From positions 124,001 to 188,000 of IMG/VR virus record IMGVR_UViG_3300021142_000002: DNA of 64,000 bases; one strand, given 5' to 3'. The position numbers were made by a program, and so were the translations under genes. The notes under the pieces are model-generated. The model saw nothing but the letters and a program-made list of their open reading frames with translations, searched no databases and had not been told where the DNA came from. Shown here in pieces: positions 16,016-35,520 of this stretch. Numbering within the stretch: position 1 is the first letter of the stretch; every line of letters starts with the position of its first letter.

Positions 16016-16111
16016 TCTCCTGCCTCTTTAGAGGGCTTAAAGTTGTTATAATAAATTGGATTACTAATGTAATTCCAATTAAATGATATATACATGAAAA
16101 TAATTTGAATT
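16016..16111 (-). repeat. 96-bp promoter-hairpin-RBS cassette, copy 1
   Basis: 95/96 identical to 25934-26029 (A16086 vs G26004). Confidence 0.9.
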
Positions 16112-16121
16112 GACATAAAGC

Positions 16122-16153
16122 CTGTATAGATTGCCCTAGGGCAATCTATACAG
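16122..16153. terminator. Perfect 32-bp palindrome
   Basis: CTGTATAGATTGCCCTAGGGCAATCTATACAG. Confidence 0.7.
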
Positions 16154-16159
16154 AATAAA

Positions 16160-17824
16160 TTATGATAGAGTATTTCTTAAACAAACGGGTGTTACACCTA
16201 AAGTCTTATATACACCTGCATCTGTAGTGGATTGTAGCCACACGATAGATACAGTTGCTCCATTGACCCAAGCCGTACTAAAATCATTAGGCAATAATAT
16301 ATTCCAATAACTTGCTATATCTCTTACAGGTCCAGTAGCACCTGCATAAATCAATTGAAAGTTATCAGGGGTTGGAGGACTTAAACTAACCGTTTGATCA
16401 TAGATAGGTTGAATTGGATAATACAATAATGTTAGCCATTGTTGTAGACTTAATGCACCTGATTTAATACTGAGCACTTGCTGACCCAATACAGAATATT
16501 CTGCATAGGCTAAATTACCGAATACACTTTCATTATTGTTTAAATAGTCAATAATAAAAGGTGTAGTAGTCGGTGTACCATAGGCTATAGTAGCCATCTG
16601 TGTAAAGGTATAGTTAGTATACCCAGATACAAAAACACGACTCATAATAATACTCAAGACTAATTCTTGAGGGTTACTAGGACCATAGTTAACAGTACCA
16701 TTATTAGGTCTAGTTACAGTAATTTGATTATTAGTTAACTTAATTAAAATGCTATGACTTAAATTAGTTAAGTAATAATCATTGGTATAGGTATTCGTTG
16801 TCCCATTCCAGTTAGGCACTATAAACACTTTAAAGGAATAGTCACTATTATAGCTAACTGTATTTACAGTATAGATATGGCTAATGGCTTTGTTACTAGG
16901 ATTACTAGAATTAACAATAGCCTCAGTACTGTCTGGATAATAAGTCAGTACTATCTTACTCTTACTGCCGACAATAGAGGTATTAAAATCATCCATGCCA
17001 AATATTTTACATTTGCTAGTACCTACACTAATTAAAGCACTTGTACCATTGTTGTAAATCAATCTAGCTTGGAAATCACCGCCAGTAAAGGGTACATTAG
17101 CCGGAATGTTAATAGTATCGGTAATGGTAGGGTCTAATAGGTTACTCGATAATGCTACATCGACTATATAGACTACATTATTTCCTAAACCTTTAATGAC
17201 ATTAGAGTTTTTAATTCTAAACTGATGCTCACCTGTTGGACCACCCGACTGCGTATAGGTCACTAAGGTAACAATCTGACCATCATACATAGCTGTACTG
17301 GTATTAAATGTAGGTGGTCTTAATATAGCTGGGTTAGTAGAATCTACTGTAACCATTTCTATATTTTCACTAACAAAGCTGCCGCTGCCATTAAAGGTTT
17401 GAGAGATTACAGTCCCTGTATTGCTAATGTCAGTACCTAGAAATAATTTAGCATAATTAATCTCACTGCCATAAGCTCTGTACTTATCATCAATGTCAAT
17501 AGTAAAGGGAGTCACTGCAGTATTTAAGAATGCTAACTCTAATACATTGGGCTGATAACTAGGTAGGTTAATAGAGTTAGAAGAACCAGCTTGAGCTTGT
17601 GCCAATAGAGAAAAATCTACTAATAATAAAGTAGGCACATAAGTCGGTGGATTAGAAGTAGTATCTACTTGAATAACTCTAAATAGTCCATGTTGATAAT
17701 CTATGACTAAATCATCAATGTTAGGAACTATTGTACCAGAATTACCAATACCATAGATTTCATTAATATTCCATGTTCTAAATCCTCTTAGAGGATCATA
17801 TTCACGTGTTGTTGGAGAGGTCAT
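16160..17824 (-). CDS. Virion structural protein (phiKZ gp26-like position)
   Basis: R.FRTW.I.EIY......VPN.DDLVID N-terminus; synteny terL-26-27-28-sheath-tube. Confidence 0.65.
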   Translation of the reverse strand: MTSPTTREYDPLRGFRTWNINEIYGIGNSGTIVPNIDDLVIDYQHGLFRVIQVDTTSNPPTYVPTLLLVDFSLLAQAQAGSSNSINLPSYQPNVLELAFLNTAVTPFTIDIDDKYRAYGSEINYAKLFLGTDISNTGTVISQTFNGSGSFVSENIEMVTVDSTNPAILRPPTFNTSTAMYDGQIVTLVTYTQSGGPTGEHQFRIKNSNVIKGLGNNVVYIVDVALSSNLLDPTITDTINIPANVPFTGGDFQARLIYNNGTSALISVGTSKCKIFGMDDFNTSIVGSKSKIVLTYYPDSTEAIVNSSNPSNKAISHIYTVNTVSYNSDYSFKVFIVPNWNGTTNTYTNDYYLTNLSHSILIKLTNNQITVTRPNNGTVNYGPSNPQELVLSIIMSRVFVSGYTNYTFTQMATIAYGTPTTTPFIIDYLNNNESVFGNLAYAEYSVLGQQVLSIKSGALSLQQWLTLLYYPIQPIYDQTVSLSPPTPDNFQLIYAGATGPVRDIASYWNILLPNDFSTAWVNGATVSIVWLQSTTDAGVYKTLGVTPVCLRNTLS

Positions 17825-17834
17825 TAAATAGTTC

Positions 17835-20411
17835 CTATTGGATAGTTAGATAAAGATGCAAGCCTTCAACTAGGTTATTTAAAAGGACCATATTGGCTTG
17901 TGTTAAAAAGTTATATTGATTTAAATTAACAGTAACTGGCGCAGTACCCCATGTGGGTGTAATCGTTACATAATTAGGATCTAAACCAAAGAAACAGGGA
18001 TCAGTATTAATAATGCTAATATAAGGATTAACCATTGCAGCAACCTGATCATTAGTATAACTAGATTGAGTAATAACAATTGTATTATTAGATACTAACT
18101 CGATCAGTCTGTTCATTAATGTAGAAACTAATACATACTTTTGGGTAATTGTAACCGTACCTGATATTGGTGTTTGTGGATCTATTTGAGATAAGAACTG
18201 ACTGACTAATTGATCTTGAGCTTGTTCAGCTATTAGTGTGGGTGTAATAACATCCAGTGTTTCAGATCTTACAAAGCTTGGATAATTAATAATAGCAAAT
18301 GGATTACCATCGTTAAACCCTAAACTAGCAGTTGTATTAACTACATCGGTATAAGCTTCTTTCTCTCTTAATTCAGAATAAGTAAAGGCTCTGCCATCTA
18401 CAAAGAATTGATTATTTCTGTAGAGCAATAATTCATAGATATTGTTATTAAACAACTTACCATGTTTAACAAACCCAAACTGAGCACTATTAACATGTTG
18501 TAGACTAGGATCAGGTAATCCGCAGTAAACAACTGTTATTAATCCACTGCTAGTATAATAGTTATTATTAGAACAAATATAAGCTCTAGAGTTATAAACT
18601 ACATAATCTAAACCTTCTATTAAATAATGACCATTAAACCAAATGTACAAATTACCCATGCCAATATCATGGGCCATAGCCATGCCATTGTATATGTCAA
18701 TACCTGCTTCAATATTACTTTGGTTTATATTGCTGGTATAGTTAATATAGTTTAATGATGTTCTAACATATCGCTCATGTTGAATTAAAGTAGGATTCCA
18801 GGTAACTGTAGTACCATTAGTTGTTTCTGTTAAAGTATAATCGCTGTTATGATTTGCATAAACTAAGGTATTACCATTTAAATAATAACAGAATATACCA
18901 AAGCCGCTAGGCATAGTTACCACAGTAGTGCTATTAGCGGCAATAACCGTATCTAAATTACTATAAGTCACTAAGCTAGGCAAAAAGACTTCATAACCAA
19001 ATCCATTACTATAAGTAATGTTAGTTAAGTCAATTGCCTGATAGGTTGTTTGGGCATTATACGTACCATCAATGTTATAGGTAATTAAATGACCACCTAA
19101 GTTACTAGCTATTGCAGGCAATGACCATGCTGTATTGCCAGGCAGTTGTCTTACTCTTTCTAAATAGGTGATAGCACCATATCTGGAATACACGCCGTAA
19201 AAAGGAGCTGAAGCTAAATTACTTTCTTCAACAGCTATCCACTTATTAAATGGACAGACTTCTAGATTATTAGCATTCCATATTGGAAGATTTGCATTAA
19301 TCCCAGATAAACATTGCTCTTTAATTCCATTAGGTAAATTCATTAAGTCTGGAATATAATTACTATCTAGCAAAGTAGGTTTAAACTGATTATTATCTCT
19401 TCTTAATAATAAGACCATGACATTGGTTAATGTTTGGTTAATATCAGAAAAGTTTTCCATCTCACCAATTCTAGTTGTTAATAACTGAGAATTAATAGAC
19501 CAATCTTTATAAGTTAGCATCCTGACTATAGAAGGTGATAGTCTTGGAAAGTAAGTCCCTACCATAGAACCATCCGATTTTGTACCGACTACAAATATTT
19601 CAGTATCGGCCACATAGACTTGATTATCTAAAGCATTAACAGATAAGATTAGTTTATTACAGTTATCATTAGTAGATAAATAGTTATTTAACATCCCTAT
19701 TGGAAATAAATCTATCATGGTAATAAAAGGATCAACAATATAGTCTATTACATCGCCTGTATGCAATGCAGAAAATAAAGGCAAACCACCTAACATTAAT
19801 AATCCATTCTTAAATAATAAAGGTGGTATTGGATGTCCATTAGCATCTAATGTTCCATGAATAGCATAGTTTGCAATCAAAGCAGTAAAGGTTAAGTAAT
19901 CACTGTAGTTATTATTGACTATAAATGATCCAGTCTTTACAGTCTGAGCCGAGGTCGCTGCATTACCTTCATAAAAGATATTAGTATAAAATCTAACATA
20001 AATGTCATCATTTAAACTCAATACCTTTTGATTAAACGTATAGTTTAATGCTAAGATAATATTGTTATCTGGCATTATCTTAATATAACTGCCATATAAA
20101 GAAAAGAATCTTCCTTGACTAAATATAATAGTTAAAGTTTGAAAGGTACTAATGATGGCATTTAAAGAAACCCATCCATAAATGTTAGAAGTAATCCCAA
20201 TACTAATAGGCTCTACTTGACCTAATTCAATCAGCATATAGAGCTGATTAGCTATGGGTAAATCTATTTGATTATATGGCAGAGGATAGGTATTAATAGC
20301 CCCTAAATTACTGGTAATTTTATTGGACTTAAATACAGCGTTTTTATCTCCCCCAGGATTACTCCATACATCAGCTAATGCCATGTTAAAAAGTAAGTTA
20401 TTTATATCCAT
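17835..20411 (-). CDS. Virion structural/baseplate protein (phiKZ gp27-like position)
   Basis: 858 aa; VWSNP..D N-terminus, LYIWFNG..LIEGLDY; synteny. Confidence 0.65.
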   Translation of the reverse strand: MDINNLLFNMALADVWSNPGGDKNAVFKSNKITSNLGAINTYPLPYNQIDLPIANQLYMLIELGQVEPISIGITSNIYGWVSLNAIISTFQTLTIIFSQGRFFSLYGSYIKIMPDNNIILALNYTFNQKVLSLNDDIYVRFYTNIFYEGNAATSAQTVKTGSFIVNNNYSDYLTFTALIANYAIHGTLDANGHPIPPLLFKNGLLMLGGLPLFSALHTGDVIDYIVDPFITMIDLFPIGMLNNYLSTNDNCNKLILSVNALDNQVYVADTEIFVVGTKSDGSMVGTYFPRLSPSIVRMLTYKDWSINSQLLTTRIGEMENFSDINQTLTNVMVLLLRRDNNQFKPTLLDSNYIPDLMNLPNGIKEQCLSGINANLPIWNANNLEVCPFNKWIAVEESNLASAPFYGVYSRYGAITYLERVRQLPGNTAWSLPAIASNLGGHLITYNIDGTYNAQTTYQAIDLTNITYSNGFGYEVFLPSLVTYSNLDTVIAANSTTVVTMPSGFGIFCYYLNGNTLVYANHNSDYTLTETTNGTTVTWNPTLIQHERYVRTSLNYINYTSNINQSNIEAGIDIYNGMAMAHDIGMGNLYIWFNGHYLIEGLDYVVYNSRAYICSNNNYYTSSGLITVVYCGLPDPSLQHVNSAQFGFVKHGKLFNNNIYELLLYRNNQFFVDGRAFTYSELREKEAYTDVVNTTASLGFNDGNPFAIINYPSFVRSETLDVITPTLIAEQAQDQLVSQFLSQIDPQTPISGTVTITQKYVLVSTLMNRLIELVSNNTIVITQSSYTNDQVAAMVNPYISIINTDPCFFGLDPNYVTITPTWGTAPVTVNLNQYNFLTQANMVLLNNLVEGLHLYLTIQ

Positions 20412-21352
20412 TAGCTAACGTCCGCATACATGGAAATGAATTTAGTAAATCCTTCTACATCATGCTTCTTAAGTAGTCCCATCATTGATTTACCTAAAGC
20501 AGTGGTATTTTGCATACTCTTTTGAATGGCACAACTCATCATTGCGATAAAGGTAGGTGGATGCTCTAATCCAATGCTACTAATTTCTGTTGCATTCGCC
20601 GCGATAAAAGCACCTCTTACAGTACTGTTATAGACAATACTAGGATCAATGTCATAGGCATTGTTATTGAGTTCAGTTAAAGCATGGGCAAATAAAAATA
20701 TTTTATTTTTTTGCATTTTGCAATTATGCACTGATCCATTTCTAAATAACTCAATAATTAGTTCCTCATTAACATTAATTAAATCATGAATGTTTTGTGC
20801 GGGAATATTAATGATTCTAGGTAATCTTTTTAACAACATAATAATGATATCTTCATCATGAGCATAAGCTTCGTTACTAAATAAGCCCATGTAATAAATA
20901 GCTGATATGATTCTAAAGTTAGTAGTAATTAATAAGTTATTATCTAGCTTTCTAGATATACCAGAGCTTACCCAAGTACTAAAGGTATCAGCCACAAAAG
21001 CTTCTTGCGCAAAGAAGACTTCTTTATCAGTTAGCCATAGTAAATCCAGCATGGCTCTTCTAACCATTAAAACATATTCGTTATAGAGTCTAATCTTACC
21101 TTCTTTATTAACAATGGCTCTTAAGTCAATGTAAGCTTTGCCGTTATGAATAATGGGATGAAAAAAAGATGGAATTGTTTCACCTACATCGCCCACAATG
21201 GCAATGACATTATCATTAATGATTTTAAATTCATATCGCTCTTTATCTATCGTTAAAAGACTTTCGATATCTTTAGCTATACCTGTCATTTTGTTATTTA
21301 AACCAGAAATAACATTAGCGGAATAAGCTGTATGTGCCGGTATTGAGTTCAT
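20411..21352 (-). CDS. Virion structural protein (phiKZ gp28-like position)
   Basis: IP.F.HPI, IGLEHPPTF.AM; AAAGGA RBS before ATG 21352. Confidence 0.6.
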   Translation of the reverse strand: MNSIPAHTAYSANVISGLNNKMTGIAKDIESLLTIDKERYEFKIINDNVIAIVGDVGETIPSFFHPIIHNGKAYIDLRAIVNKEGKIRLYNEYVLMVRRAMLDLLWLTDKEVFFAQEAFVADTFSTWVSSGISRKLDNNLLITTNFRIISAIYYMGLFSNEAYAHDEDIIIMLLKRLPRIINIPAQNIHDLINVNEELIIELFRNGSVHNCKMQKNKIFLFAHALTELNNNAYDIDPSIVYNSTVRGAFIAANATEISSIGLEHPPTFIAMMSCAIQKSMQNTTALGKSMMGLLKKHDVEGFTKFISMYADVS

Positions 21353-21514
21353 AAATAGTTCCTTTCTATGTGTTGAGTCATAGGATAAACCTATAGTTTT
21401 ACTAATAAAAGTTATTATATTTACAGTAAAAATAGCCCCTACTGTCACTTATATTGTGTAAAGGTAGGCTTCTACTACAGAATAAATTCTTTTTTATTTA
21501 CAGGAAGAAAAAAC

Positions 21515-24289: not shown

Positions 24290-24291
24290 TT

Positions 24292-25197: not shown

Positions 25198-25229
25198 AGA
25201 GTACATAGAGCCTAGGCTCTATGTACTCT
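25198..25229. terminator. Perfect 32-bp palindrome between convergent genes
   Basis: AGAGTACATAGAGCCTAGGCTCTATGTACTCT. Confidence 0.7.
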
Positions 25230-25235: not shown

Positions 25236-25927
25236 CTAGAACAATCTGCGGGTAATAAAGTCCGCCACTTCATTCATGTCATCCACTGACGGGAATGAGG
25301 CGTTTTCCCCTATCAAGTTAAATTGTGGAACGCGATACTGCGCTCCGTTTAACTCCACCTTATAGAACCATATCCCAGCTTTGTTCTGGGATGATTCTAA
25401 CACCTTTGCACCGCTAACCCAAACTCCCTCATATTCTGGGAGTTCATTTAAGAGGATTTTGCACGGCATGCCATCGGGGATGGCATAGTCTTTTTCTTCA
25501 ATGACTGAAGAAGTTAAAAGAGGTTCTAAGACCTCTAATACTTCGTCAACTAACCAGCTGGTTACTTCTTCAACTTTTGCTGGAGGGCATCCTCCAGCAA
25601 TGAGTAGGAATTTACCAATTAACTTCTCAACTACTACTCCGGCGTTATTGCCACTAAGCGCATCCTTAGTCTTTAGTTTTTTTCTGACAGAGTTTAACAC
25701 CCTTTCTGAAAGGGTGTAACTTGTCACAAAGATTTCTGCAGTACACTGCAGAAGTCCAAGAAACTTTTCTTTCCCTAAATCTTCAGCGGCGATTGCCACC
25801 TGATCTAGGTGGAGCATAAACTCTTCTACTTCATCTGATCCGTATGGGTCAAATGACATTGAAGAGTTTTCAACCAATCTTACCAGACCATCGGCTATTA
25901 AGCCTTTGTCAAATTGTATTTTTTCAT
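25236..25927 (-). CDS. GC-rich orphan protein behind cassette copy 2 (apparent 1-nt frameshift near start)
   Basis: RBS-led ATG at 25927 is out of frame with the 25236-25877 ORF across an A6 run. Confidence 0.65.
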
Positions 25928-25933
25928 ATCAAA

Positions 25934-26029
25934 TCTCCTGCCTCTTTAGAGGGCTTAAAGTTGTTATAATAAATTGGATTACTAATGTAATTCCAATTAA
26001 ATGGTATATACATGAAAATAATTTGAATT
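25934..26029 (-). repeat. 96-bp promoter-hairpin-RBS cassette, copy 2
   Basis: 95/96 identical to 16016-16111. Confidence 0.9.
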
Positions 26030-26039
26030 TACATAGATA

Positions 26040-26068
26040 CTCTAGGATAGCATATAGCTATCCTAGAG
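26040..26068. terminator. Hairpin, 12-bp stem
   Basis: CTCTAGGATAGC-ATATA-GCTATCCTAGAG. Confidence 0.6.
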
Positions 26069-26075
26069 ACTATGT

Positions 26076-26612
26076 TTAATTAATTGTTTCCTGACTTAAA
26101 TCGGCATACTTAAAGGTAATGCCATAACCGCTCGTAAAACCAAAAGACACACAATTTCTAGTAATCGTTAAGTACCCTAATTTTAATCCTAACCATTTCG
26201 CTAACCCACCAATTATAAAGGCTGGATAAATCATGATATCGTTATATTCAGTAACATTTCCAGCTAATGGAATATAAGTATCATCATCCAATACCCATGT
26301 TCCATTTAACTGACCTAATGGATCTAATGTCAAACACAATGTATTAATGCCAAAATCATTTAAAGTAAAACCTATTGATACTTTACTTAATCTTAAATCT
26401 TCAGCTAACATTTTAACAATATCAGATGGCTTGGAATTAACAGATAACTCATCTAGAAATAGTTGACATAAATCATTGACTTGTTCGGTTAACATTACTA
26501 CTACTTCTTTATTTTCTTCTTTTTTCAAAAAGCCTTGTAGTAATAAACCTATTGGATAAATTAAATCTATTTTATCTGAAGTCTCTCTAGGAGATGCTAG
26601 TGCGGTAGCCAT
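26076..26612 (-). CDS. Hypothetical protein
   Basis: 178-aa ORF. Confidence 0.65.
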   Translation of the reverse strand: MATALASPRETSDKIDLIYPIGLLLQGFLKKEENKEVVVMLTEQVNDLCQLFLDELSVNSKPSDIVKMLAEDLRLSKVSIGFTLNDFGINTLCLTLDPLGQLNGTWVLDDDTYIPLAGNVTEYNDIMIYPAFIIGGLAKWLGLKLGYLTITRNCVSFGFTSGYGITFKYADLSQETIN

Positions 26613-27596: not shown

Positions 27597-27606
27597 TAAG
27601 TTCCTT

Positions 27607-27948: not shown

Positions 27949-27987
27949 TTTATTCTTCCTTATTTTGTTGTTTATTAAAAATATACT

Positions 27988-28143
27988 CTAAGAAACTTTT
28001 AATTGTTTCTGTATGACATCTCTAGTTTCCCCAATCTTATCATCTTTTCTAAAAGGATTTCCATAAGGAGATCCTCTGCCGCAATAAACAGTTGGATAAG
28101 GAGAAACTATTTTGTGATGTTTATTTACTATGTTTATTTGCAT
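27988..28143 (-). pseudogene. Truncated DUF4326-like ORF (51 aa, absent from ORF track)
   Basis: MQINIVNKHH..TVYCGRGSPYGNPF..TRDVI then TAG; the family's C-terminal CxC/CH motif is missing. Confidence 0.6.
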
Positions 28144-28375
28144 TAACCAATGCTCTTACTGTATCAAAAATATCCATATCTATTGGCGTATACTCTTCAG
28201 CTTTTTCATTAACATAAGCTAACATTGTATCCGGATCATTGCTTATTTTATTAACTACGGCTCCAAGCAAAGCAACGCTTAAATTAAATAATTCTTCACT
28301 GCTAACATTTGTTAATTCAGTTAACCATTTAATATCTTCTTCTCTTTCTTTATTAATTGAAAATGTTTCTTTCAT
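28121..28375 (-). CDS. Small ribbon-helix-helix-like protein
   Basis: TFSINKE..EDIKWL.E.TNVS.EELF..SVALL pattern. Confidence 0.45.
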   Translation of the reverse strand: MKETFSINKEREEDIKWLTELTNVSSEELFNLSVALLGAVVNKISNDPDTMLAYVNEKAEEYTPIDMDIFDTVRALVNANKHSK

Positions 28376-28680
28376 TAATTTATCCCCTTTAGCACAGATG
28401 CTTTAAATCTAATTAGTTTAGCGCCTAAAAAATACATTCCGCCAAAACCAGTTACAAAACTTTGTGGTGGAAATTTAAAAAGTGGATAATTTAATTTATT
28501 TCCCTGCCCATAAGTACTTTCATCAACCTGAATAATAGAAATACGTTTAATATTTCTAAAACTGCTAAAAATAAACTTACTTAAATCAGATCCAAAGATC
28601 TGATTAGTTACTTCAATAGTAACTTCTTTACTATCAACAAAAACTTCTTCTTCGAGTGTTATTGCCATTTTGTATTTCAT
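28375..28680 (-). CDS. Hypothetical protein
   Basis: 101-aa ORF, TAATG coupled. Confidence 0.55.
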   Translation of the reverse strand: MKYKMAITLEEEVFVDSKEVTIEVTNQIFGSDLSKFIFSSFRNIKRISIIQVDESTYGQGNKLNYPLFKFPPQSFVTGFGGMYFLGAKLIRFKASVLKGIN

Positions 28681-29900: not shown

Positions 29901-29903
29901 AAC

Positions 29904-30374
29904 TTATTCCTTGTCTAAGATATAGACCCTTTTAGTTTTTAAAGAAATAGATTTTTCTATGTTTAAGATACTTTCATCTTCATCGCCTGGATAAAAAATA
30001 TTAAAGCTAAAAGAGCTATAATGATTATTTAGTAAACATCTACTAATAACAGCATGGGATATCCCAAGTTTTGCAGCTATTAATCTCTGCGATATACCAA
30101 CGTATAATACATTGCTATAGCAATCATAAACATTGATGACCTTATATCTTTCTAGAAAAGCTTTCTTAGCTCTTTCAAAATCTGCTTCAACATCTTTTGA
30201 ATTTTTTACAATTAACCAGCCATTAGCCAAGTAACCAAAATTATTGTATCTTAATACTCTAAATAAAGCGACGTAAGACCTTCTTGTTAGCTTTTCTGTT
30301 TTTACAAGACTAAGTCCATATCTAGTCTGGCGTGCATCAAAAGCACATTTGATTGCATAAACATCTTTACTCAT
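29904..30374 (-). CDS. Protein with 2 NUMOD1-like HTH modules
   Basis: VYDCYSNVLYVGISQRLIAAKLGISHAVISRCL. Confidence 0.55.
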   Translation of the reverse strand: MSKDVYAIKCAFDARQTRYGLSLVKTEKLTRRSYVALFRVLRYNNFGYLANGWLIVKNSKDVEADFERAKKAFLERYKVINVYDCYSNVLYVGISQRLIAAKLGISHAVISRCLLNNHYSSFSFNIFYPGDEDESILNIEKSISLKTKRVYILDKE

Positions 30375-30407
30375 GTTTCATTTCTCCTAAGTAAATTAAT
30401 ATCAATT

Positions 30408-30430
30408 AGATAATGTATATGTTAAAAAAG
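30408..30430 (-). promoter_or_regulatory. Putative early phage promoter
   Basis: Minus strand TTTTTTAACATATACATTATCT. Confidence 0.6.
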
Positions 30431-30442
30431 GTAGAAAACATA

Positions 30443-30476
30443 ATAGATACGGAGTGCCTAGGCACTCCGTATCTAT
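30443..30476. terminator. Perfect 34-bp palindrome
   Basis: ATAGATACGGAGTGCCTAGGCACTCCGTATCTAT. Confidence 0.7.
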
Positions 30477-30479
30477 ACT

Positions 30480-30902
30480 TTAAAGTTTAATACTATTAAG
30501 CCCTTCACCGTATTTATACAATGTTACGCCTTGTTTAATCATTTCACTTACTGGATCTGAAATAAATCTTACACTAACAGGTTTAACAGGTACCTTAGAT
30601 ATAACTTCAAACTTACATAACCTATCATCAGGTTTAAATGTATCTGCGGGCAGTGTATAAAGATAGCCACCGTTTTTATACACCCATTTAAAGGCATTTA
30701 AACATCTTTCCTGCATAAAAGGTTTACCATCATGAGTCCATTGTTTAATAGTATCATCATTCCAGTTACCAGTAAAAGTTAGTGCAGTCCATAATTGAGG
30801 TGATGCAAATACGGCACTTTCACCATTTAAAACTTTAGATTGTCTAGGCTCAAATAGTTCTATCTTGCCATTTGTTGATCCATGATAAACTATTTTAGAC
30901 AT
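30480..30902 (-). CDS. ADP-ribosyltransferase-fold-like protein
   Basis: VYHGS, VFAS, GYLYTL and a late E-V-I-S strand in ART-like order. Confidence 0.45.
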   Translation of the reverse strand: MSKIVYHGSTNGKIELFEPRQSKVLNGESAVFASPQLWTALTFTGNWNDDTIKQWTHDGKPFMQERCLNAFKWVYKNGGYLYTLPADTFKPDDRLCKFEVISKVPVKPVSVRFISDPVSEMIKQGVTLYKYGEGLNSIKL

Positions 30903-30905
30903 AGT

Positions 30906-31661
30906 TTATTTCCAATCAATAGCACGTAGTCCAAAGACTTGTATTTTATGCCAGCCTAATGCATCTTTTACCATAGTAAAACTAGACATATCCGATTCCA
31001 TTCCAGCTACTGGAATAATTAATTTTCTAGTAGCTTCTAGATCCTCAGGTGTAAATTGAAAGCTATCTATAATAGATTCTAATCCTGCAGTTTGGAACTG
31101 ATTAGCTTGTTTAATACCACCTTCATTTACAAAGTCCCATGTCCAGATATCTCTTACTATTTTGGTATACATTCCCTTCATCATAGTATCGGTTGTAACA
31201 CTACGAATAGAGAAAGCTACATTTTCTTCATCATTATTTAAATGATCAGCCAATGTTGGACCATAAGGTCCACAAGGTCTTAACCAGCCTATAGTTAAAA
31301 CAATCTCTTTACCAAACTCATCTTTCCAAGTTTGTAAATCAACTCTTCTAATATGGTGAGATAATAACTTTTCTTCAGTCTTTAGTAGACGAGCAATTAA
31401 TTCAGGTAACTTCATATTAGAGATATCTGGATGCCCATATTCTCCTCTACAAAATCCACCATCAATTCTTCGCCTAACAATACCGCCCTCTTCAAACAAT
31501 TGCTTAACTGCAGGCAGTAGTGGATAAAATGTTCCACTATGATTACAGGTATTAAAGGCACCTAAAATGACTCTATAATAGCCTTTATCATCTGGTCTTA
31601 ATTTGCTACAGGCGTTTAAGCCTGGTTTTGAAAGTGCCTCATATCTGGCGATTATTGCCAT
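30906..31661 (-). CDS. Prohead protease (phiKZ gp175-like)
   Basis: GEYGHP, SHHI, P.GPYG, AFSIRS, TWDFVNEGGI. Confidence 0.88.
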   Translation of the reverse strand: MAIIARYEALSKPGLNACSKLRPDDKGYYRVILGAFNTCNHSGTFYPLLPAVKQLFEEGGIVRRRIDGGFCRGEYGHPDISNMKLPELIARLLKTEEKLLSHHIRRVDLQTWKDEFGKEIVLTIGWLRPCGPYGPTLADHLNNDEENVAFSIRSVTTDTMMKGMYTKIVRDIWTWDFVNEGGIKQANQFQTAGLESIIDSFQFTPEDLEATRKLIIPVAGMESDMSSFTMVKDALGWHKIQVFGLRAIDWK

Positions 31662-31736
31662 AATTAAATCCTCTAATTATTGTAAGTTTCCTCTATATGA
31701 TAAGAAATTAAAGGATTTAAAGGCAAAAAAAAAGGA

Positions 31737-31760
31737 AGGGATAGTATAATAACTATCCCT
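31737..31760 (-). terminator. Hairpin terminator
   Basis: AGGGATAGT-ATAATA-ACTATCCCT with T-run on minus strand. Confidence 0.55.
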
Positions 31761-31846
31761 ACAGGGTTATTTTAGTTTAGCAATTACTTCATCAAATCAG
31801 GCATAACAATCTGATATTTATTTTCATTAAAATAGATCATTATCAC

Positions 31847-32203
31847 TCACCTCTTTTTTCTAGATTGTCTAACCGTCTTGTAACTATGTCGCAGTGTTCG
31901 GTTACTTCCATAGTTGCTCTTTGAGCCTTTTCCAGCTTTGTGAACACCCCTACTATCTCTTTTGATTCTGTTACTACCAGATACACTGGCTTTCCCAATG
32001 GACGTTTCATTATTTTTTCCCTCGCAATATAAATAAAGACTCATTATTAAGTCTTTAGCCTCTTTTCGTTTACCTTCATTAATTTTCTTACTTAAATTAA
32101 CAGCATAGCCATTACATAATGCTGCATTGTAACTAGAGTAAGATACTGTACTGAATATAAATAAACTAATTAATATTAATAGCTTAATCATCTCCACATC
32201 CAA
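31847..32203 (-). CDS. Hypothetical protein with N-terminal signal/TM segment and basic tail
   Basis: KLLILISLFIFSTVSYS N-terminus. Confidence 0.55.
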   Translation of the reverse strand: MDVEMIKLLILISLFIFSTVSYSSYNAALCNGYAVNLSKKINEGKRKEAKDLIMSLYLYCEGKNNETSIGKASVSGSNRIKRDSRGVHKAGKGSKSNYGSNRTLRHSYKTVRQSRKKR

Positions 32204-32553
32204 TCCTTTAAATAATACTTACTTTTAAACAGCCCCTCTCTCCATCTTTCTACTGCGGTAAAGGCATTAAAGTGAGTCAGTAATCTTTTAAAGGCCATTT
32301 CTTCACCGCATAAAACACATTCTGCCCTACCTTCAAATACATAGTGAAATTCATGAGGATTGTACTTTGGTGTACGACAATGGATTTTACAATCCCAGCG
32401 TTTAATACCGTATCTATCTTCATAACTAGATACTCTGTATTTGTGTAAACCAGCTCTGCACAGTAAATTAAACCATTTAATGTTTCCTGGCTTAATTACC
32501 TCGAACTTCCTGTTGGTTGATAAATCTGCCATTGTAGCCCTCCACCTCTTCAT
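32188..32553 (-). CDS. Hypothetical protein
   Basis: LCRAGLHKY..CVLCG pattern. Confidence 0.5.
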   Translation of the reverse strand: MKRWRATMADLSTNRKFEVIKPGNIKWFNLLCRAGLHKYRVSSYEDRYGIKRWDCKIHCRTPKYNPHEFHYVFEGRAECVLCGEEMAFKRLLTHFNAFTAVERWREGLFKSKYYLKDWMWR

Positions 32554-33016
32554 GTTCCATGAACATTAATTTACCAATATTCATTCCATCATAAAATCTT
32601 AAGTTATGATACTGTGCCGCATTCATTAATTCTAATACTAATTTACCAGACCATCCTGGCTGAATTAAAATAGCCGCACCATGATCACTACCGCAGCGCC
32701 CAAGACTACTATCTAGATAAAAGAATCCAGTAATGTTATTTGGAAGACTAATAGTCTCCTTTAATCCACCTAAAGCAAATTGATTTGGTTTTAGAATCAG
32801 ATTTTCTTTAAACAAATCAAATTCTGTTAACTGTAGTTTATCTTTTCCTGGAATAATAGTTTGATGAAAGATATCAGGTACAGTTTCTAAATAGATTAAA
32901 CTATCTAATCTAACATCAACATGTACTGATTTTACTGCATTAGTATCTAATGGTAAACCAGTTACTAAACCAGTATCGACTAAGTTCTTTAATTTCTTTC
33001 CAACTATTAAACTCAC
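32492..33016 (-). CDS. dcd: dCTP deaminase (dUTPase-like fold)
   Basis: VDVRL, LKPNQFALG...E.I.LP..I.G....SSLGR.G......IQPGWSGKLVLEL.N, IG.L.F. Confidence 0.82.
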   Translation of the reverse strand: MSLIVGKKLKNLVDTGLVTGLPLDTNAVKSVHVDVRLDSLIYLETVPDIFHQTIIPGKDKLQLTEFDLFKENLILKPNQFALGGLKETISLPNNITGFFYLDSSLGRCGSDHGAAILIQPGWSGKLVLELMNAAQYHNLRFYDGMNIGKLMFMEHEEVEGYNGRFINQQEVRGN

Positions 33017-33807
33017 TATTTTTTCTCCGCGTTAACATACTTCATTTTTGTATGTGGTTTTTCACTTTCAAAGTTATACAGAATACTTACCATATCTTCA
33101 TTGGTAACAATAATGTTAGTCAAATCTTTAGGTATGTAATTGAGTATTTTTAATACTCCATTAATCATATCCAAATCTAATTCCTTTCTGGATACTAATT
33201 CATCTAGTAACCTATCTTGATAAGTTAAATAGTTATCAATGTGTTTATAAATATCATAACAATCTATTGCCTTTGGTGATAAATTATTAAAATTAGCCAC
33301 TAAAGATCTGCCTAGTCGTACTAAATTCCATGTATTATTAGACATTGTCCCATAGGGAATAGCGGTAGTGCTAAAGATAGCCTTTCTAAGGCAATGTAAT
33401 TGCGCTGGCATCATTTTTCTGATAATGTTACGATACACTATCTCGGCCATTAAAAGCTCTCTAGTAGACACTGGGTAAGCTTCTATGGCATGATCCATTA
33501 CTATCTTTAATTGAGGATAATAATCTGGCAATGTAAATCCATCTTTACCAATATCTACAGATAAAGATAATATTTCGCCTCGCAATATCCCTAAACGATT
33601 AAGTACCTTATTTGCAAATACTTTTCTATCAGGAAAGCATAAATGATACGCTTCAATAATAGCTTCATTAGATACAGTATAACCTTCTTTTAGACTCTTT
33701 ACAATGCTTTCAGCTTCTTGTGGAATCTCTTTATTCTTTTTAGCAAGAACCCCTACTGCAGCTATTAGTTTCCATCTAGCGACATTTGTTTTAACACTGG
33801 TTTTCAT
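33016..33807 (-). CDS. Hypothetical protein
   Basis: 263-aa ORF with AGGAG RBS. Confidence 0.65.
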   Translation of the reverse strand: MKTSVKTNVARWKLIAAVGVLAKKNKEIPQEAESIVKSLKEGYTVSNEAIIEAYHLCFPDRKVFANKVLNRLGILRGEILSLSVDIGKDGFTLPDYYPQLKIVMDHAIEAYPVSTRELLMAEIVYRNIIRKMMPAQLHCLRKAIFSTTAIPYGTMSNNTWNLVRLGRSLVANFNNLSPKAIDCYDIYKHIDNYLTYQDRLLDELVSRKELDLDMINGVLKILNYIPKDLTNIIVTNEDMVSILYNFESEKPHTKMKYVNAEKK

Positions 33808-34094
33808 TTGTTTCTCCTAACGATAAAAATTGAACTCGGATAACAATCTCTTATCCAAGATAAATAAGTTTCTTTATTAGTTCTAAGGTCAATAATCATT
33901 TTAGAACTTTTATTAGTTTTAATAGTAAAGAAAAAACCTTCTTTATGAAGATTATCTACCATTAAATATAGTTTTAGAATAGCTCTCCCTCGTTTTAAAA
34001 TAGTTTGTCTATCCTTTGGCAAACTATCTATTTGCTTAATTAAAGAAACTTGCTTAATGAGTTCCTTAGCAATTAACCCTGTATTAACAGACAT
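33804..34094 (-). CDS. Hypothetical basic protein
   Basis: 96-aa ORF. Confidence 0.5.
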   Translation of the reverse strand: MSVNTGLIAKELIKQVSLIKQIDSLPKDRQTILKRGRAILKLYLMVDNLHKEGFFFTIKTNKSSKMIIDLRTNKETYLSWIRDCYPSSIFIVRRNK

Positions 34095-34377
34095 TACTAT
34101 TAATTTTCCTTTTAAAGATCTCTGCTTCTTTAACTACATCTCCTTTATGTAATTTAATAGACCACCCATTTTCTTGACATCTATAAAGATAAATGGCTAT
34201 TTTAATACATCGGCTAATAATAGATGCTCTATTAGGATAGGTAGCTTTTGGATCTTGCTTTTGTAGGCTTAGCATAAATCCATCTAAGGTATCTATTAAT
34301 TTTGGATCTTTAAAACAGACATCTACTCTGTGCCTATTCCTTTCTAATCCTTTATTTTCTATTGCTCTTAGTCCCAT
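34084..34377 (-). CDS. Possible ribbon-helix-helix protein
   Basis: RVDVCF.DP.LID.LD.....NRASIISRCI. Confidence 0.45.
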   Translation of the reverse strand: MGLRAIENKGLERNRHRVDVCFKDPKLIDTLDGFMLSLQKQDPKATYPNRASIISRCIKIAIYLYRCQENGWSIKLHKGDVVKEAEIFKRKINSNVC

Positions 34378-34408
34378 TATTATTCTCCTAAATTTTTACA
34401 AATAAAAA

Positions 34409-34436
34409 AGAGATAGCAGGATATCCTGCTATCTCT
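34409..34436. terminator. Perfect 28-bp palindrome
   Basis: AGAGATAGCAGGATATCCTGCTATCTCT. Confidence 0.7.
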
Positions 34437-34445
34437 AGTTATTAC

Positions 34446-34739
34446 TTATTTAAAGTTTTTCTTATTATAATGTTCACCCTCAATGTCTTCAATTACTGAT
34501 AGTTTAGAAATATCACATTTCTGCGCATACAGCTGAATACTGTCTTCAGTTTCAGTCTTTACTTCAACTGACCCATGATACACAACTTTAAATACCATTG
34601 TTTTGCTTTCAGTCATAAATCGGTTTACTACTTTACCGATAGCGCCTAAATGCTTAGTTTCTAGAGATATTACAGTATCTCCAATATCAAATCTAAAGTC
34701 CTTGAAGAACTCCTCATGATTAAGACTCTTAATTTTCAT
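34446..34739 (-). CDS. SH3-like hypothetical protein
   Basis: FRFDIGDTV......GAIGKVV. Confidence 0.55.
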   Translation of the reverse strand: MKIKSLNHEEFFKDFRFDIGDTVISLETKHLGAIGKVVNRFMTESKTMVFKVVYHGSVEVKTETEDSIQLYAQKCDISKLSVIEDIEGEHYNKKNFK

Positions 34740-34812
34740 TGTTCTCCTCGTAAATTCTATCCATTTTGCCTCTCCTTTATTGGATTAAAGGTGTTAGTTA
34801 TTAACACCTAAT

Positions 34813-34838
34813 AGATAATATAAATATTAAAAAATATA
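34813..34838 (-). promoter_or_regulatory. Putative early phage promoter
   Basis: Minus strand TTTTTTAATATTTATATTATCT. Confidence 0.5.
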
Positions 34839-34865
34839 GAATAATAAAAAAAAATAAAAAATGAT

Positions 34866-34901
34866 GTATGGAAATGAGAGCTATAGCTCTCATTTCCATA
34901 C
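34866..34901. terminator. Perfect 36-bp palindrome
   Basis: GTATGGAAATGAGAGCTATAGCTCTCATTTCCATAC. Confidence 0.7.
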
Positions 34902-34908
34902 GATTGGA

Positions 34909-35415
34909 CTATGCCGTCCAATCGTTATCATCTTCTTTAACCTGATCTTCCTCCTCCACTGGGAAGATCAGGTCCCAGTGGGGTTCTTCAAGTAATACTG
35001 GGCGTGGCTTTGTCACGTATTCGCAGTCGCTTAATGCGACTATTCCGGTCCATTGACCGGATTCCCCCCGGTAATCGGGGTCAGTATACTTCCCCATAAC
35101 AATGGGGTGACGGCCATCGTCATGGTCATTTTTGCACATTGTGACTCCCTTCACAATGAACTTATGCCCCTTGGGGCAATATAACATCTGTCCCTCAAAG
35201 GCCGTTAGAGACCATATGGCCTCTATGTCTCTTAATAGATCTAAAATTGGTTGCAACTGCCCTTCTGGGCAGCTGAAAGCAGCGGATATTACTATCCGCT
35301 GCATGTTCTCTATATAGAGCAGCATCCATCTGGGGGTGCTCTCTTCCTCATACTCGTGCGAGTATGTGGCAACAAACTCATTAACCATTTGCATCAAAAT
35401 TTCAAAAATGTTCAT
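34909..35415 (-). CDS. GC-rich orphan protein behind cassette copy 3
   Basis: 168 aa, acidic, GCAGGAGA RBS. Confidence 0.75.
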   Translation of the reverse strand: MNIFEILMQMVNEFVATYSHEYEEESTPRWMLLYIENMQRIVISAAFSCPEGQLQPILDLLRDIEAIWSLTAFEGQMLYCPKGHKFIVKGVTMCKNDHDDGRHPIVMGKYTDPDYRGESGQWTGIVALSDCEYVTKPRPVLLEEPHWDLIFPVEEEDQVKEDDNDWTA

Positions 35416-35520
35416 ATCAAATCTCCTGCCTCTATGAGGACTTTAAAAGTTATAGTAAGTTGGATTACTTATATAAGTTAATCCATTAAAATAATATATA
35501 CATGAAATTTTTTTTTGAAT
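35413..35520 (-). repeat. Diverged promoter-hairpin-RBS cassette, copy 3
   Basis: Shares CATATCAAATCTCCTGCCTCT, TTGGATTAC and TATATACATGAAA with copy 2. Confidence 0.75.

Follow-up and report, generated by a model that had tools for sequence, protein, structure and literature searches.

A repeated promoter-leader cassette in front of unrelated, compositionally foreign genes in an uncultured chimallivirus

Why should nearly the same hundred or so bases stand in front of genes that have nothing else in common? The question is raised by the window, the whole 64,000-nucleotide stretch of viral DNA analysed here, in which a sequence-only reading had described two near-identical copies and one diverged copy of a minus-strand series (early-promoter motif, hairpin, short CCTCT..AGAGG hairpin, RBS, ATG) and had compared them with the promoter-early stem-loop (PeSL) cassettes of T4-type phages. 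We found that the repeat is a unit of about 110 bases that joins an early promoter of the phage to a folded mRNA leader and a ribosome site, and that it occurs in at least six copies; the timing of the promoter and the fold of the RNA are inferred.

The window lies in a 220-kb freshwater contig that encodes chimallin (Pfam match, 47.7 bits), RNAP beta, a PhuZ-like tubulin homologous to the TubZ/PhuZ gene of a relative, and virion genes of phiKZ type, among them the phiKZ gp28, gp29 and tube families. The source genome is a chimallivirus, phiKZ-like and not T4-like, and the earlier attribution to this group held. Across the whole contig we identified six full, two decayed and one diverged copy of the cassette, all on the minus strand and more than the three first noticed. 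The full copies fall into two types, and those in the window are called A1, A2 and B2; positions marked "genome" refer to the contig and all others to the window.

Genome 140076, 149994 and 116903, minus strand: predicted transcription starts of the type A copies
Genome 24311, 159484 and 190048, minus strand: predicted transcription starts of the type B copies
Genome 74768 and 73678, minus strand: decayed remnants
Genome 43210, minus strand: diverged relative of the cassette

The claims that 16016-16111 and 25934-26029 agree at 95 of 96 positions and that 35413-35520 is a diverged copy both held. The single difference is a T/C in the promoter core, and a match of this length (96 nt) with only that mismatch is not remotely expected by chance; a repeat search gave 95% identity over 111 nt (16016-16126 versus 25934-26044). 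For the diverged copy, identity is 72-79% across the leader and 66-68% across the promoter part, and the 13-mer TTTCATGTATATA occurs 3 times against 0.68 expected. Leaders are 99-100% identical among type B copies and 96% identical between A1 and A2, while 21-28% of positions differ between the two types. At the ATG identity drops to background (about 50%). As homology extends up to the start codon, the RBS and the ATG belong to the cassette unit.

The upstream half of the unit belongs to the commonest intergenic motif of the genome, TATAYATTAT-N6-G, for which a PWM gave 35 sites including all cassette copies, whose cores align without gaps; the commonest intergenic 9-mers fall within TACATTATCT. 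Every site (35/35) is in the sense orientation relative to the downstream gene, and the same motif stands upstream of the genes for chimallin, the RNAP-beta-like protein and the helicase. The plus strand, where the sheath and tube genes lie, yielded no site. The members of this class in the window are as follows.

16077-16110, minus strand: promoter of copy A1 (ATTCAAA box 16104-16110, A/T tract, core TATATATCAT 16083-16092, N6 16077-16082)
25995-26028, minus strand: promoter of copy A2 (ATTCAAA 26022-26028, core TATATACCAT 26001-26010, N6 25995-26000)
35485-35520, minus strand: promoter of copy B2 (ATTCAAA 35514-35520, A-tract, core TATATATTAT 35491-35500, N6 35485-35490)
15260-15291, minus strand: non-cassette early promoter of the same class with a short leader, predicted +1 at 15260
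34808 (predicted +1), minus strand: early promoter after the B2 terminator, whose leader opens with an unrelated hairpin, GGTGTTA...TAACACC
8160, 12421, 27139, 30403, 40015 (weak) and 58556 (predicted +1): further members of the class

Early promoters of phage AR9 have the layout AAATATATATTAT-(6N)-G+1 (PMC5312081), and for phiKZ and phiR1-37 the rule is a start 6 nt after the element (PMC7598289). The cassette promoter has this published layout of jumbo-phage early promoters read by the virion RNAP. The layout is a matter of sequence; because no RNA data exist, the start site and early timing, like the polymerase itself, are inferred by analogy, and the term early promoter is upheld here only for a sequence class.

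Downstream of the predicted start, the leader of 62-64 nt consists of a stem-loop that begins at the predicted first base, a 4-bp mini-hairpin abutting the SD, a 7-nt spacer and ATG(AA).

16011-16076, minus strand: leader of copy A1 (predicted +1 G 16076, hairpin 1 16058-16076, hairpin 2 CCTC/GAGG 16023-16034, SD GGAG 16017-16020, followed by ATG 16008-16010)
25928-25994, minus strand: leader of copy A2 (predicted +1 G 25994, hairpin 1 25976-25994, hairpin 2 25941-25952, SD 25935-25938, followed by ATG 25925-25927)
35416-35484, minus strand: leader of copy B2 (predicted +1 G 35484, hairpin 1 35462-35484, hairpin 2 35429-35439, SD 35423-35426, followed by ATG 35413-35415)

Hairpin 1 reads AATTGGAATTAC-ATTA-GTAATCCAATT in A1 and A2 and GGATTAAC-TTATATAA-GTAATCC in B2. 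Hairpin 2 is CCTC-(TAAA/ATA)-GAGG in all three window copies, with CCCT/AGGG in its place in copy A3. The RBS GGCAGGAGA is present, and the order of elements first described, from promoter to ATG, was confirmed at the coordinates listed above. Hairpin 1 begins with the predicted +1 G, so that the leader would open with a 5'-terminal stem-loop.

With 7-8 bp and a bulge, the stems of hairpin 1 are short (-5 to -7 kcal/mol), and the leaders as a whole do not fold clearly better than shuffled sequences (z = -0.9 to -2.2). Thermodynamic support is weak, and the structural claim therefore rests on position and comparative evidence. A hairpin of -3 kcal/mol or lower starts at +1 or +2 in 9 of the 30 distinct early 5' ends, as compared with 1.9 +/- 1.2 in dinucleotide shuffles (n=100, maximum 6). 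Several of these hairpins, at different early promoters, are unrelated in sequence, and most early promoters, which have short leaders, show no palindrome. When our six leaders were aligned and folded with MAFFT/RNAalifold, the 5' arms of types A and B were misaligned, so that the consensus understates hairpin 1; alignment of leaders across genomes was unreliable and was left out of the pair counts. Read as DNA, several of the palindromes reach 4-10 bp upstream of +1, and a role at the DNA level is therefore not excluded. No Rfam family reached threshold in 14500-36500.

Each cassette fronts one ORFan, unrelated to the others, followed by a terminator of its own. The window holds three such units.

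16121-16154, minus strand: terminator-like perfect palindrome upstream of A1, ending the 554-aa virion-protein gene (16160-17824)
15549-16010, minus strand: A1 cargo, 153-aa ORFan, GC 44.6%, GC3 0.47 (second highest of 173)
15500-15542 (approximate ends), minus strand: G6...C10 stem plus T-run, the terminator closing the A1 unit
26040-26068, minus strand: terminator hairpin upstream of A2
25236-25927, minus strand: A2 cargo, 213-aa ORF at 25236-25877, GC 42.8%, GC3 0.42
25198-25229, both strands: bidirectional palindrome terminator common to the A2 cargo and a convergent tail-tube gene
35549-35586, minus strand: perfect 38-nt terminator palindrome upstream of B2
34909-35415, minus strand: B2 cargo, 168-aa ORFan, GC 46.7%, GC3 0.54 (highest of 173)
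34866-34901, minus strand: palindrome terminator closing the B2 unit

A terminator-like palindrome lies directly upstream of five of the six copies; it is variable and lies outside the conserved repeat. All five units run from promoter-leader through one ORF to a T-run hairpin or palindrome. With a terminator usually before the module and another after the cargo, each copy is thus an insulated one-gene unit. No recombinase or endonuclease was noted adjoining the copies within the stretches examined.

Copy A2 departs from this scheme in one respect. Its ATG opens only 9 codons, because an A6 run (25919-25924) leaves the 213-aa ORF in a different frame. Independent-run contigs (X2 and X12) cover this region with zero differences, and no indel was seen in four runs. 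From sequence alone, we infer that this cargo is either a pseudogene or requires a -1 shift.

The cargo proteins show no mutual similarity by blastp. Library scans of PHROGs and Pfam gave no match, and an exhaustive search of representatives and the Atlas gave no annotation; the sole exception is a 154-aa cargo assigned to PF27247 (MJ1673, unknown function) in a precomputed annotation. The 168-aa B2 cargo matched only itself among 1.84 billion representatives, and no donor of the cargo genes was identified. Their composition is nonetheless distinctive. Five cargo ORFs occupy GC3 ranks 1-5 of 173 genes (P = 8e-10), with GC3 of 0.38-0.54 against 0.244 +/- 0.058 and GC of 37-48% against 33.3 +/- 3.7%, and the island of raised GC coincides with the ORF. 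GC1 is raised alongside GC3, whereas GC3 is ordinary in chimallin, sheath and tube and in other early and late genes of high expression. It is conceivable that the high GC3 was selected and not inherited from a donor.

The copies are also mosaics of each other. The upstream block (ATGTMAATTC versus AATGGATTC) is discordant with the A/B split, copy A3 is A-like in its 5' part and B-like in its 3' part, and the upstream terminator is common to A2 and B3, where the 60-nt block 26033-26092 recurs upstream of B3 and again at genome 71648-71713. In the four-gamete test, 93 of 325 site pairs fail among our copies. Such mosaicism points to recombination or conversion, and near-identity is accordingly best read as a product of copying or conversion. 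Chimeric copies are shown; circles and strain-to-strain swaps are not. A 30.6-kb IMG/VR contig bounded by B2 and B3 is flagged 'terminal-repeat', but an assembly break explains it equally well. The four DNA runs compared contain the same strain, and their contigs stop at the repeat, so that they are silent on recombinant molecules.

Comparison with relatives gives a partial view of these loci. The 153-, 213-, 178- and 168-aa genes have no homologous counterparts in the nearest relative, at 54-56% amino-acid identity, where other genes fill those slots; all three cassette loci in the window are variable in this comparison. Where this phage has the 153-aa unit, a relative at 54% amino-acid identity (L060) has only a promoter and a 34-aa ORF between its virion-protein and terminase genes. 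Taken alone, the argument from variable slots is weak, because many loci differ anyway at 54% identity. A comparison of how well cassette cargo and other first genes are conserved in relatives says little, because most early genes lack homologues at this distance. A single-sequence locus search with the 554-aa virion protein found nothing, and an alignment of that protein was needed to search for relatives.

Two distant relatives carry their own versions of the cassette with the same architecture, G004 in 11 copies and G005 in 4, although the three cassette-bearing genomes share only 39-41% amino-acid identity in a virion protein. For the G004 leaders, base 1 is paired with base 24 in the consensus fold, and 2 compensatory pairs occur in hairpin 2. 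Of three G005 leaders that were folded, two have hairpin 1 starting at +1; in this genome hairpin 2 abuts the SD as GCUGC/GCAGC, or as CCCU/AGGG in the fourth copy. Recombination between copies is evident in G004 as well (134/231 pairs fail the four-gamete test, Rm = 6). Cargo GC3 is likewise high, with 10 of 11 G004 genes within rank 14 of 155 and G005 genes at ranks 2, 5 and 7 of 85. One G004 cargo is a NUDIX gene of ordinary GC3, whose homologue in this phage is not cassette-driven; apart from this homologue, the cargo sets of the three genomes share nothing.

Searches of IMG/VR, JGI metagenomes and GenBank phages turned up no close strain or relative with this cassette. In IMG/VR, exact or gapped patterns returned only two further contigs, both from the same phage, and the G004 pattern returned only its own contig. 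In the JGI metagenomes the source contig was the sole match, the remaining 15 being chance matches, and GenBank phages matched neither this cassette nor that of G004. As a separate observation, AGTAATCC is enriched on the minus strand (20 against 4.2 expected), mostly at non-cassette sites.

The copies and their anatomy are shown, as are the class of the promoter, the mosaic structure, the composition of the cargo, the variability of the loci and the recurrence of the pattern in two further genomes. On this basis we cautiously favor the view that the cassette is a self-contained early-expression module that holds and exchanges foreign accessory genes, in which the start site, early timing, RNA function of the hairpins and gene exchange itself are inferred. 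The injected virion RNA polymerase would read the upstream half (ATTCAAA box near -35, A/T tract, core TATAYATTAT, six bases, start G) as an ordinary member of the phage early promoter class. The most likely role of the leader would be to make expression independent of downstream sequence: the 5'-terminal hairpin may shield the end of the mRNA against decay that depends on it, and the mini-hairpin at the SD may keep the ribosome site exposed. Copies would spread and homogenise through homologous recombination or gene conversion, and the cassettes would serve as slots for compositionally foreign accessory genes, probably exchanged among related phages.

The interpretive claims of the sequence-only reading are supported by this evidence at the strength with which they were put, with some caveats. 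The mutual unlikeness of the downstream genes held, and recent duplication or conversion is supported by the mosaic copies. That every cassette ATG starts a gene needs one correction, at copy A2. Gene capture or swapping is supported by cargo GC3, by the differing slots and by recurrence in two genomes, although no swap was observed and the nearest relative, whose downstream genes do differ, is distant. 'PeSL-like' holds only as an analogy, because the promoter is not of the sigma-70 type and the conserved stem-loop lies within the predicted transcript and is not a terminator.

The most serious rival, and a possible one, is a dedicated immediate-early regulon without gene capture, in which one factor (a polymerase form, an RNA-binding protein or a ribosome modifier) must recognise promoter and leader, selection with occasional conversion keeps the copies nearly identical, and selection also sets the GC3 of the cargo, for example by favoring host-like codons until phage functions appear or an mRNA body that resists AU-directed RNases. 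In its favor, the architecture is kept in three genomes at such distance, the cargo is broadly, and not just for some genes, a GC3 outlier in all three, including 10/11 in G004, and the NUDIX cargo of ordinary GC3 is a gene that this phage also has. However, the A and B leaders differ at over a fifth of positions and both persist, so that constraint alone fails to explain 99-100% identity within a type. Cargo is also unshared between the three genomes, except for the NUDIX homologue that is not cassette-driven here, and is missing from the syntenic slots of the nearest relative; GC1 is raised too, other highly expressed genes are ordinary in GC3, and the A2 cargo is frame-broken.

It is less likely that the inverted repeats act as DNA, either as operators for a shut-off repressor over the start or as extruded hairpins that aid the virion polymerase. 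Several palindromes do straddle +1, reaching -4 to -10, and the phage N4 virion RNAP reportedly uses DNA hairpin promoters (PMC4496689), which offers a precedent. Against this, hairpins of unrelated sequence occupy the same position, an arrangement easier to reconcile with a role of RNA structure than with a protein that binds a specific sequence, most early promoters have short leaders and no palindrome, and hairpin 2 sits 45-55 nt downstream of +1, by the SD. Very unlikely is true homology with T4-type PeSLs, with the host sigma-70 RNA polymerase reading the cassette. A terminator adjoins the promoter, as in PeSLs (PMC2839356), and type B copies have a weak TTCAAA-17-TATTAT match, but this match (9/12 in B2) is at chance level (2 versus 3.4 expected, with counts at or below shuffled expectation), type A copies, A1 and A2 among them, give no sigma-70-like match, the core belongs to a polymerase-specific class common to the chimallin and RNAP genes, and the phage is not T4-like. 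An assembly artefact or chimera can be practically ruled out. Assemblies do break at the cassette and one contig bounded by two copies is flagged for terminal repeats, yet every copy lies inside unique flanks within the 220-kb contig, and these flanks are reproduced in independent X2 contigs (9.1, 0.76 and 4.4 kb, 0 differences) and in other IMG/VR contigs (99.97-100% identity).

A bolder version of the module reading, which we consider unlikely, is that the two-hairpin leader is a clade-wide cis-signal that privileges the first phage transcripts. Such a signal could make these transcripts immune to mRNA decay that depends on the 5' end, whether driven by phage or host (an early NUDIX gene is present in the phage). 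It could also favor their export from the early infection vesicle or nucleus, or their loading onto ribosomes, and any gene recombined behind the leader would be expressed at once. If true, the cassettes would be plug-and-play slots for a fast-turnover foreign arsenal, plausibly for host takeover or anti-defence.

Little is understood of how jumbo phages that form a nucleus take up accessory genes, insulate them and time their expression, and descriptions of their early mRNAs consist mainly of promoter logos. The present unit of promoter, 5'-terminal hairpin and SD-abutting hairpin is defined by sequence in three divergent uncultured chimalliviruses, recombines heavily between copies and marks compositionally foreign, non-conserved genes. 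If confirmed, candidate recently acquired early genes could be flagged straight from sequence. For phage engineering the unit provides an expression leader that is compact and insulated by nature, and it makes testable whether the fate of early mRNA in chimalliviruses depends on structure at the 5' end.

Among known systems, the virion-RNAP early promoters of jumbo phages are the closest to the upstream half. They share the conserved AT-rich element near -10 with a start 6 nt downstream, the extra conserved positions at -20/-30, the tens of copies before early genes of mostly hypothetical proteins, and the placement before nuclear shell and RNAP genes and not before sheath and tube (plus strand). 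In the promoter papers 5' UTRs are given as typically 31-40 nt, whereas the cassette subclass has a structured leader of 62-69 nt repeated with the promoter, and the passages searched in those papers mention no multi-copy conserved leader, 5'-terminal hairpin or link to cargo of foreign composition. For the leader, the nearest parallel is the 5'-terminal stem-loops that stabilise mRNA (the ompA leader and others) by blocking entry of RppH and of RNase E or RNase J. The cassette hairpin would likewise leave no or almost no unpaired 5' bases if +1 is the predicted G, although its stems are short, the start is only predicted and an effect on half-life is inferred.

T4-type PeSLs are likewise composite regulatory repeats of about 100 bp in many copies and one orientation (Arbiol 2010, PMC2839356; Comeau 2014, PMC4122927). 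They combine an early promoter with a terminator and flank non-conserved ORFans between conserved blocks, their chimeric copies point to inter-copy recombination, and both they and the cassette are proposed linkers for modular shuffling. The cassette also meets the PeSL criterion of many copies in plastic regions flanking ORFans, its cargo being ORFans or of unknown function. It differs in that its promoter is the phage's own early class and not sigma-70-type, its conserved stem-loops are predicted leader elements by +1 and the SD and not terminators, its terminator is a separate, variable palindrome, its homology reaches the start codon, and the phage family is another; mini-circles and strain-to-strain swaps are not shown for it. 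The morons of lambdoid phages, described by Hendrix and colleagues, are single genes of atypical base composition with their own promoter and terminator, located between genes that are adjacent in relatives. The cassette unit is similarly one gene with its own promoter and terminator and a composition unlike the genome. Morons, however, carry diverse host-type promoters and are expressed from prophages, whereas a single phage-specific promoter-leader serves all the cassette units, in a nucleus-forming phage of virulent type. If confirmed, the cassette would extend the PeSL and moron principle to a family of phages that rely on a polymerase of their own.

The sequence-only reading had described three minus-strand stretches as repeated modules of promoter, hairpins and ribosome-binding site, and this description held when the sequence was read again. 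As claimed, 16016-16111 and 25934-26029 of the window are nearly identical, with one base differing, and 35413-35520 is a diverged copy; the full repeat shared by the first two (copies A1 and A2) extends to 111 nt at 95% identity. The parent, a 220,366-bp IMG/VR virus contig (GC 33%; CheckV estimate 75% complete) of which the window spans positions 124001-188000, originates from freshwater metagenomes and is present in many 2016 runs and one 2020 lake run. A search of the whole contig found six full copies of the cassette, all on the minus strand.

Cassette copies and their relatives in the contig
Genome 140076 (window 16076), minus strand: predicted start of type A copy A1
Genome 149994 (window 25994), minus strand: predicted start of type A copy A2
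Genome 116903, minus strand: predicted start of type A copy A3
Genome 24311, minus strand: predicted start of type B copy B1
Genome 159484 (window 35484), minus strand: predicted start of type B copy B2
Genome 190048, minus strand: predicted start of type B copy B3
Genome 74768 (outside the window): decayed remnant, leader truncated, full promoter and 5' arm of hairpin 1 kept
Genome 73678 (outside the window): decayed remnant, core destroyed, terminator, ATTCAAA box and TTTCATGTAT kept
Genome 43210: diverged relative of the cassette

Leaders are 99-100% identical among type B copies, 96% between A1 and A2, and 72-79% between types, and right at the start codon cassette identity falls to the background level, about 50%. 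In the remnant at 74768, the 5' arm of hairpin 1 is joined to a short leader and a hydrophobic ORF of 34 aa.

Genes for a large terminase of phiKZ type, a tail tube, a gp29-like sheath and a gp28-like vertex protein lie in the window. Other parts of the contig carry genes for chimallin (PF25677, 47.7 bits; cut-off 27), an RNA polymerase beta-like subunit and helicases, and a homologue of the TubZ/PhuZ gene of the nearest relative (L060, ENA contig k141_1421269). No cultured terminase is more than 46% identical, the nearest coming from jumbo phages of Vibrio and Xanthomonas; with the gene content above, this makes the phage a deep-branching chimallivirus that is uncultured.

A single motif, ...TATA(C/T)ATTATCTAWT..., accounts for the words most over-represented between genes. 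A position matrix found 35 sites, every one on the minus strand and sense to the downstream gene, usually 22-65 nt from the ATG, and none on the plus strand, where sheath and tube are encoded. The cassette cores TATATATCAT, TATATACCAT and TATATATTAT match the motif in a gap-free alignment and are followed by six bases and then G, as at other motif sites. This layout matches the experimentally mapped early promoter of AR9, AAATATATATTAT-(6N)-G+1 (PMC5312081), and the rule stated for phiKZ and phiR1-37 that the start lies 6 nt after the element (PMC5312081, PMC7598289). The same motif stands upstream of the chimallin, RNA polymerase beta-like and helicase genes, and on these combined grounds we class the cassette promoter as early. 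That the virion polymerase reads it is inferred by analogy from sequence alone, without RNA data. The cassettes, several other early promoters of this phage and early promoters of relatives have in common an ATTCAAA box some 32-38 nt ahead of the start, a position in keeping with the conservation at -30 that has been reported for early promoters of phiKZ type. A sigma-70 reading of the cassette promoter was unsupported by sequence matching.

Near-identical short leaders and ribosome-binding sites also recur among other early promoters, as pairs or triplets with 84-96% identity over 45-76 nt, and promoter-leader copying thus extends beyond the hairpin cassette.

Early promoters sharing leaders
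Set 1: window 30381-30425; genome 195837-195881; genome 47887-47935
Set 2: genome 114368-114421; genome 120538-120591
Set 3: window 15226-15300; genome 25242-25316

If +1 is the predicted G, hairpin 1 opens at the first transcribed base, as GGA(A)UUAC-AUUA-GUAAUCC in type A and GGAUUA(A)C-UUAUAUAA-GUAAUCC in type B. Nine of 30 distinct predicted early 5' ends carry a hairpin of -3 kcal/mol or lower at +1 or +2, against 1.9 +/- 1.2 (maximum 6 in 100) in dinucleotide shuffles, and the summed energies are -51.9 against -17.2 +/- 6.2. Eight of these nine have leaders of at least 39 nt; leaders of 22-30 nt generally have no 5' hairpin. The 5' hairpins include unrelated sequences (43210, 132160, 158808 and 77335), and L060 has three further sequence-unrelated ones, one before the PhuZ gene. 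Hairpin 2 has only 4 bp (CCUC/GAGG) and directly abuts the Shine-Dalgarno (SD) sequence (GGAG, 7-nt spacer, ATG); in A3 it reads CCCU/AGGG, with two pairs altered on both sides. Stability of the whole leader was not clearly above that of shuffles (z = -0.9 to -2.2). Separately, L060 16547-17082 is a 535-nt non-coding stretch behind a promoter almost identical to that of type B. In it are about seven copies of TAGTGAATC and two to three of TAGTAATCCCA, sequences similar to our hairpin 1 in its 3' arm. The stretch may represent an iteron-like array or a non-coding RNA.

Behind each copy lies one ORF, of 151, 168, 153, 154 or 213 aa, or, behind A3, a 28-aa hydrophobic peptide. These cargo proteins show no similarity to one another, and library scans matched none to a PHROG or Pfam model; the 168-aa protein found only itself among 1.84 billion representatives, and the 154-aa protein falls in PF27247/MJ1673, a mostly viral family without known function. 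Of 173 genes, the four with the highest GC are all cargo ORFs, and five cargo ORFs hold ranks 1-5 in third-position GC (GC3 0.54, 0.47, 0.46, 0.42 and 0.38; genome 0.244 +/- 0.058; chance 8e-10), with GC1 raised too. The GC island coincides with the cargo ORF, the cassette proper being AT-rich. GC3 is ordinary in chimallin, sheath and tube, so an expression-linked pattern of this genome is not the explanation; such a shift is the classic mark of recently acquired genes. Each cargo ORF is followed by its own terminator, in some cases a G/C-run stem with a T-tract, in contrast to the phage's usual AT-rich palindromes; such terminators may have come along with foreign genes.

G/C-run structures at cargo ends
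Window 15500-15542: G6...C10 plus T11
Genome about 189490-189520: hairpin with G10 loop

In A2, the cassette ATG is followed immediately by an A6 run (window 25919-25927), so that only 9 codons are open from it, and the 213-aa ORF lies in the -1 frame relative to that ATG. This A6 stretch is unchanged in contigs from the independent runs X2 and X12, and no indel was seen there in any DNA run compared. As the frame break is reproducible, this cargo is either decaying or needs a -1 shift; a pseudogene and a slippage or frameshift site both remain possible.

Cassette copies have recombined with one another. A four-gamete test was failed by 93 of 325 informative site pairs among the contig's copies. 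The segment around -45 to -32 takes one form (ATGTMAATTC) in A1, A2 and B3 and another (AATGGATTC) in A3, B1 and B2, a grouping that conflicts with the types A and B as defined by core and leader. In A3, a mosaic, hairpin 1 resembles type A and the part preceding hairpin 2 resembles type B. A2 and B3 share a 60-nt terminator block ahead of the cassette, and the block is also present at one other site. Recombinant molecules are invisible in assemblies because contigs break at the repeat. The 30.6-kb IMG/VR UViG_3300021127_000026, flagged as having direct terminal repeats, is exactly the B2-to-B3 segment (genome 159421-190073; window 35421 to past its end), whose bounding cassettes are identical over 99 bp. 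It most likely reflects an assembly break, although it formally equals the expected look of a cassette-to-cassette circle.

The loci were compared with those of L060, whose flanking virion proteins are 54-56% identical in amino acids, using simple ORF calls made here for the relatives. In the gap between virion-protein and terminase genes, L060 has nothing but a hairpin-bearing, cassette-like promoter and an ORF of 34 aa, against our 153-aa unit; a second relative has a 184-aa gene there. The tail-tube slot holds 77- and 108-aa genes against our 178- and 213-aa genes, and the slot after a 240-aa virion protein holds one unrelated 248-aa gene, where ours has B2 at the head of about eight genes. 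These differences lend support to cargo exchange but, at this distance, do not decide the matter.

Two more distant genomes have cassettes of their own. G004 (IMG/VR UViG_3300045806_000063; 181 kb, GC 38%, 41% aa identity) has 11 copies, 81-99% identical and mostly preceded by a terminator-like inverted repeat; most run ATTCAAA box, core, N6, G and a 65-69-nt leader. RNAalifold pairs base 1 with base 24 in hairpin 1 and gives hairpin 2 as GUCAUU/AAUGAC or GCUAUU/AAUAGC, with two compensatory pairs and hybrid copies present; by the four-gamete test, 134 of 231 site pairs are incompatible (Rm = 6 in about 115 nt). Its 11 cargo ORFs are mutually unrelated, 10 of them lie in the GC3 top 14 of 155 genes, and nine of 10 scanned have no Pfam match, the other being a GT2 glycosyltransferase. 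G005 (UViG_3300032753_000007; 110 kb, 39% aa identity) has four copies of yet another version, in which hairpin 1 opens at +1 in two of three folded leaders and hairpin 2 adjoins the SD (GCUGC-GAUGA-GCAGC; CCCU-GAUGA-AGGG in the fourth copy); its three analysed cargo genes hold GC3 ranks 2, 5 and 7 of 85. The 20 cargo proteins of the three genomes have nothing in common with one another. Copies far more alike within than between genomes indicate concerted evolution, and recurrence in three genomes implies an old, clade-wide architecture whose sequence and cargo turn over. The only G004 cargo with ordinary GC3 (19703-20155) is a homologue of an early-promoter-driven NUDIX hydrolase of our contig (PF00293, 60 bits; genome 71695-72138, outside the window), which might bear on 5'-end-dependent mRNA decay and the 5' hairpins.

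Other elements were also observed. A group I intron (RF00028; 77 bits, gathering score 50) lies at window 44072-44386 on the minus strand, a related 202-nt stretch (79% identical) at window 38519-38720, and three more related copies outside the window, with genome 106.6-107.8 kb also involved; a NUMOD/HNH-like endonuclease homologue lies near the intron locus in the relative. Several introns appear to be present in large genes. Perfect 32-38-bp palindromes between genes, usually centred on CTAG or CCTAGG, are terminators, often bidirectional, a habit shared by L060; 9-mers containing GCCTAGGC occur 16-18 times, counting both strands.

Palindrome terminators (about 20 more in the contig)
Window 16122-16153
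Window 25198-25229
Window 34866-34901
Window 35549-35586

On balance, we favor an insulated, portable early-expression unit as the best-supported account, with moderate confidence. In order, it would comprise a terminator, a promoter for the phage polymerase, a stem-loop at the 5' end, a linker, a hairpin next to the SD, SD and ATG, cargo and a second terminator. In geometry the 5' hairpin resembles known mRNA stabilisers, a role that is inferred, and the SD-abutting hairpin would leave the ribosome site free whatever sequence comes next, likewise by inference. Cargo exchange between phages is inferred from composition, unrelatedness and variable loci.

Each rival explains part of the data, less well than the portable unit. 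A selected immediate-early regulon would rest on constraint, but types A and B both evidently work yet differ at 21-28% of leader positions, so constraint alone cannot account for identities of 96-100% inside each type; the simpler reading is recent copying or conversion. A less likely rival would have the hairpins act as operators at the DNA level, in favor of which several of them, as palindromes, reach 4-10 bp upstream of +1. Homology to the promoter-early stem-loop (PeSL) cassettes of T4-type phages, with a sigma-70 promoter, is opposed by a promoter that is not of that type by sequence. An assembly artefact, a very unlikely reading, likewise covers only part of the observations.

No description of multi-copy structured leaders was found in the jumbo-phage transcriptome papers searched. 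The portable unit works in a similar way to T4 PeSLs (PMC2839356, PMC4122927), but it fails membership of that group, as its promoter type and the inferred role of its conserved stem-loop differ. It also works similarly to morons.
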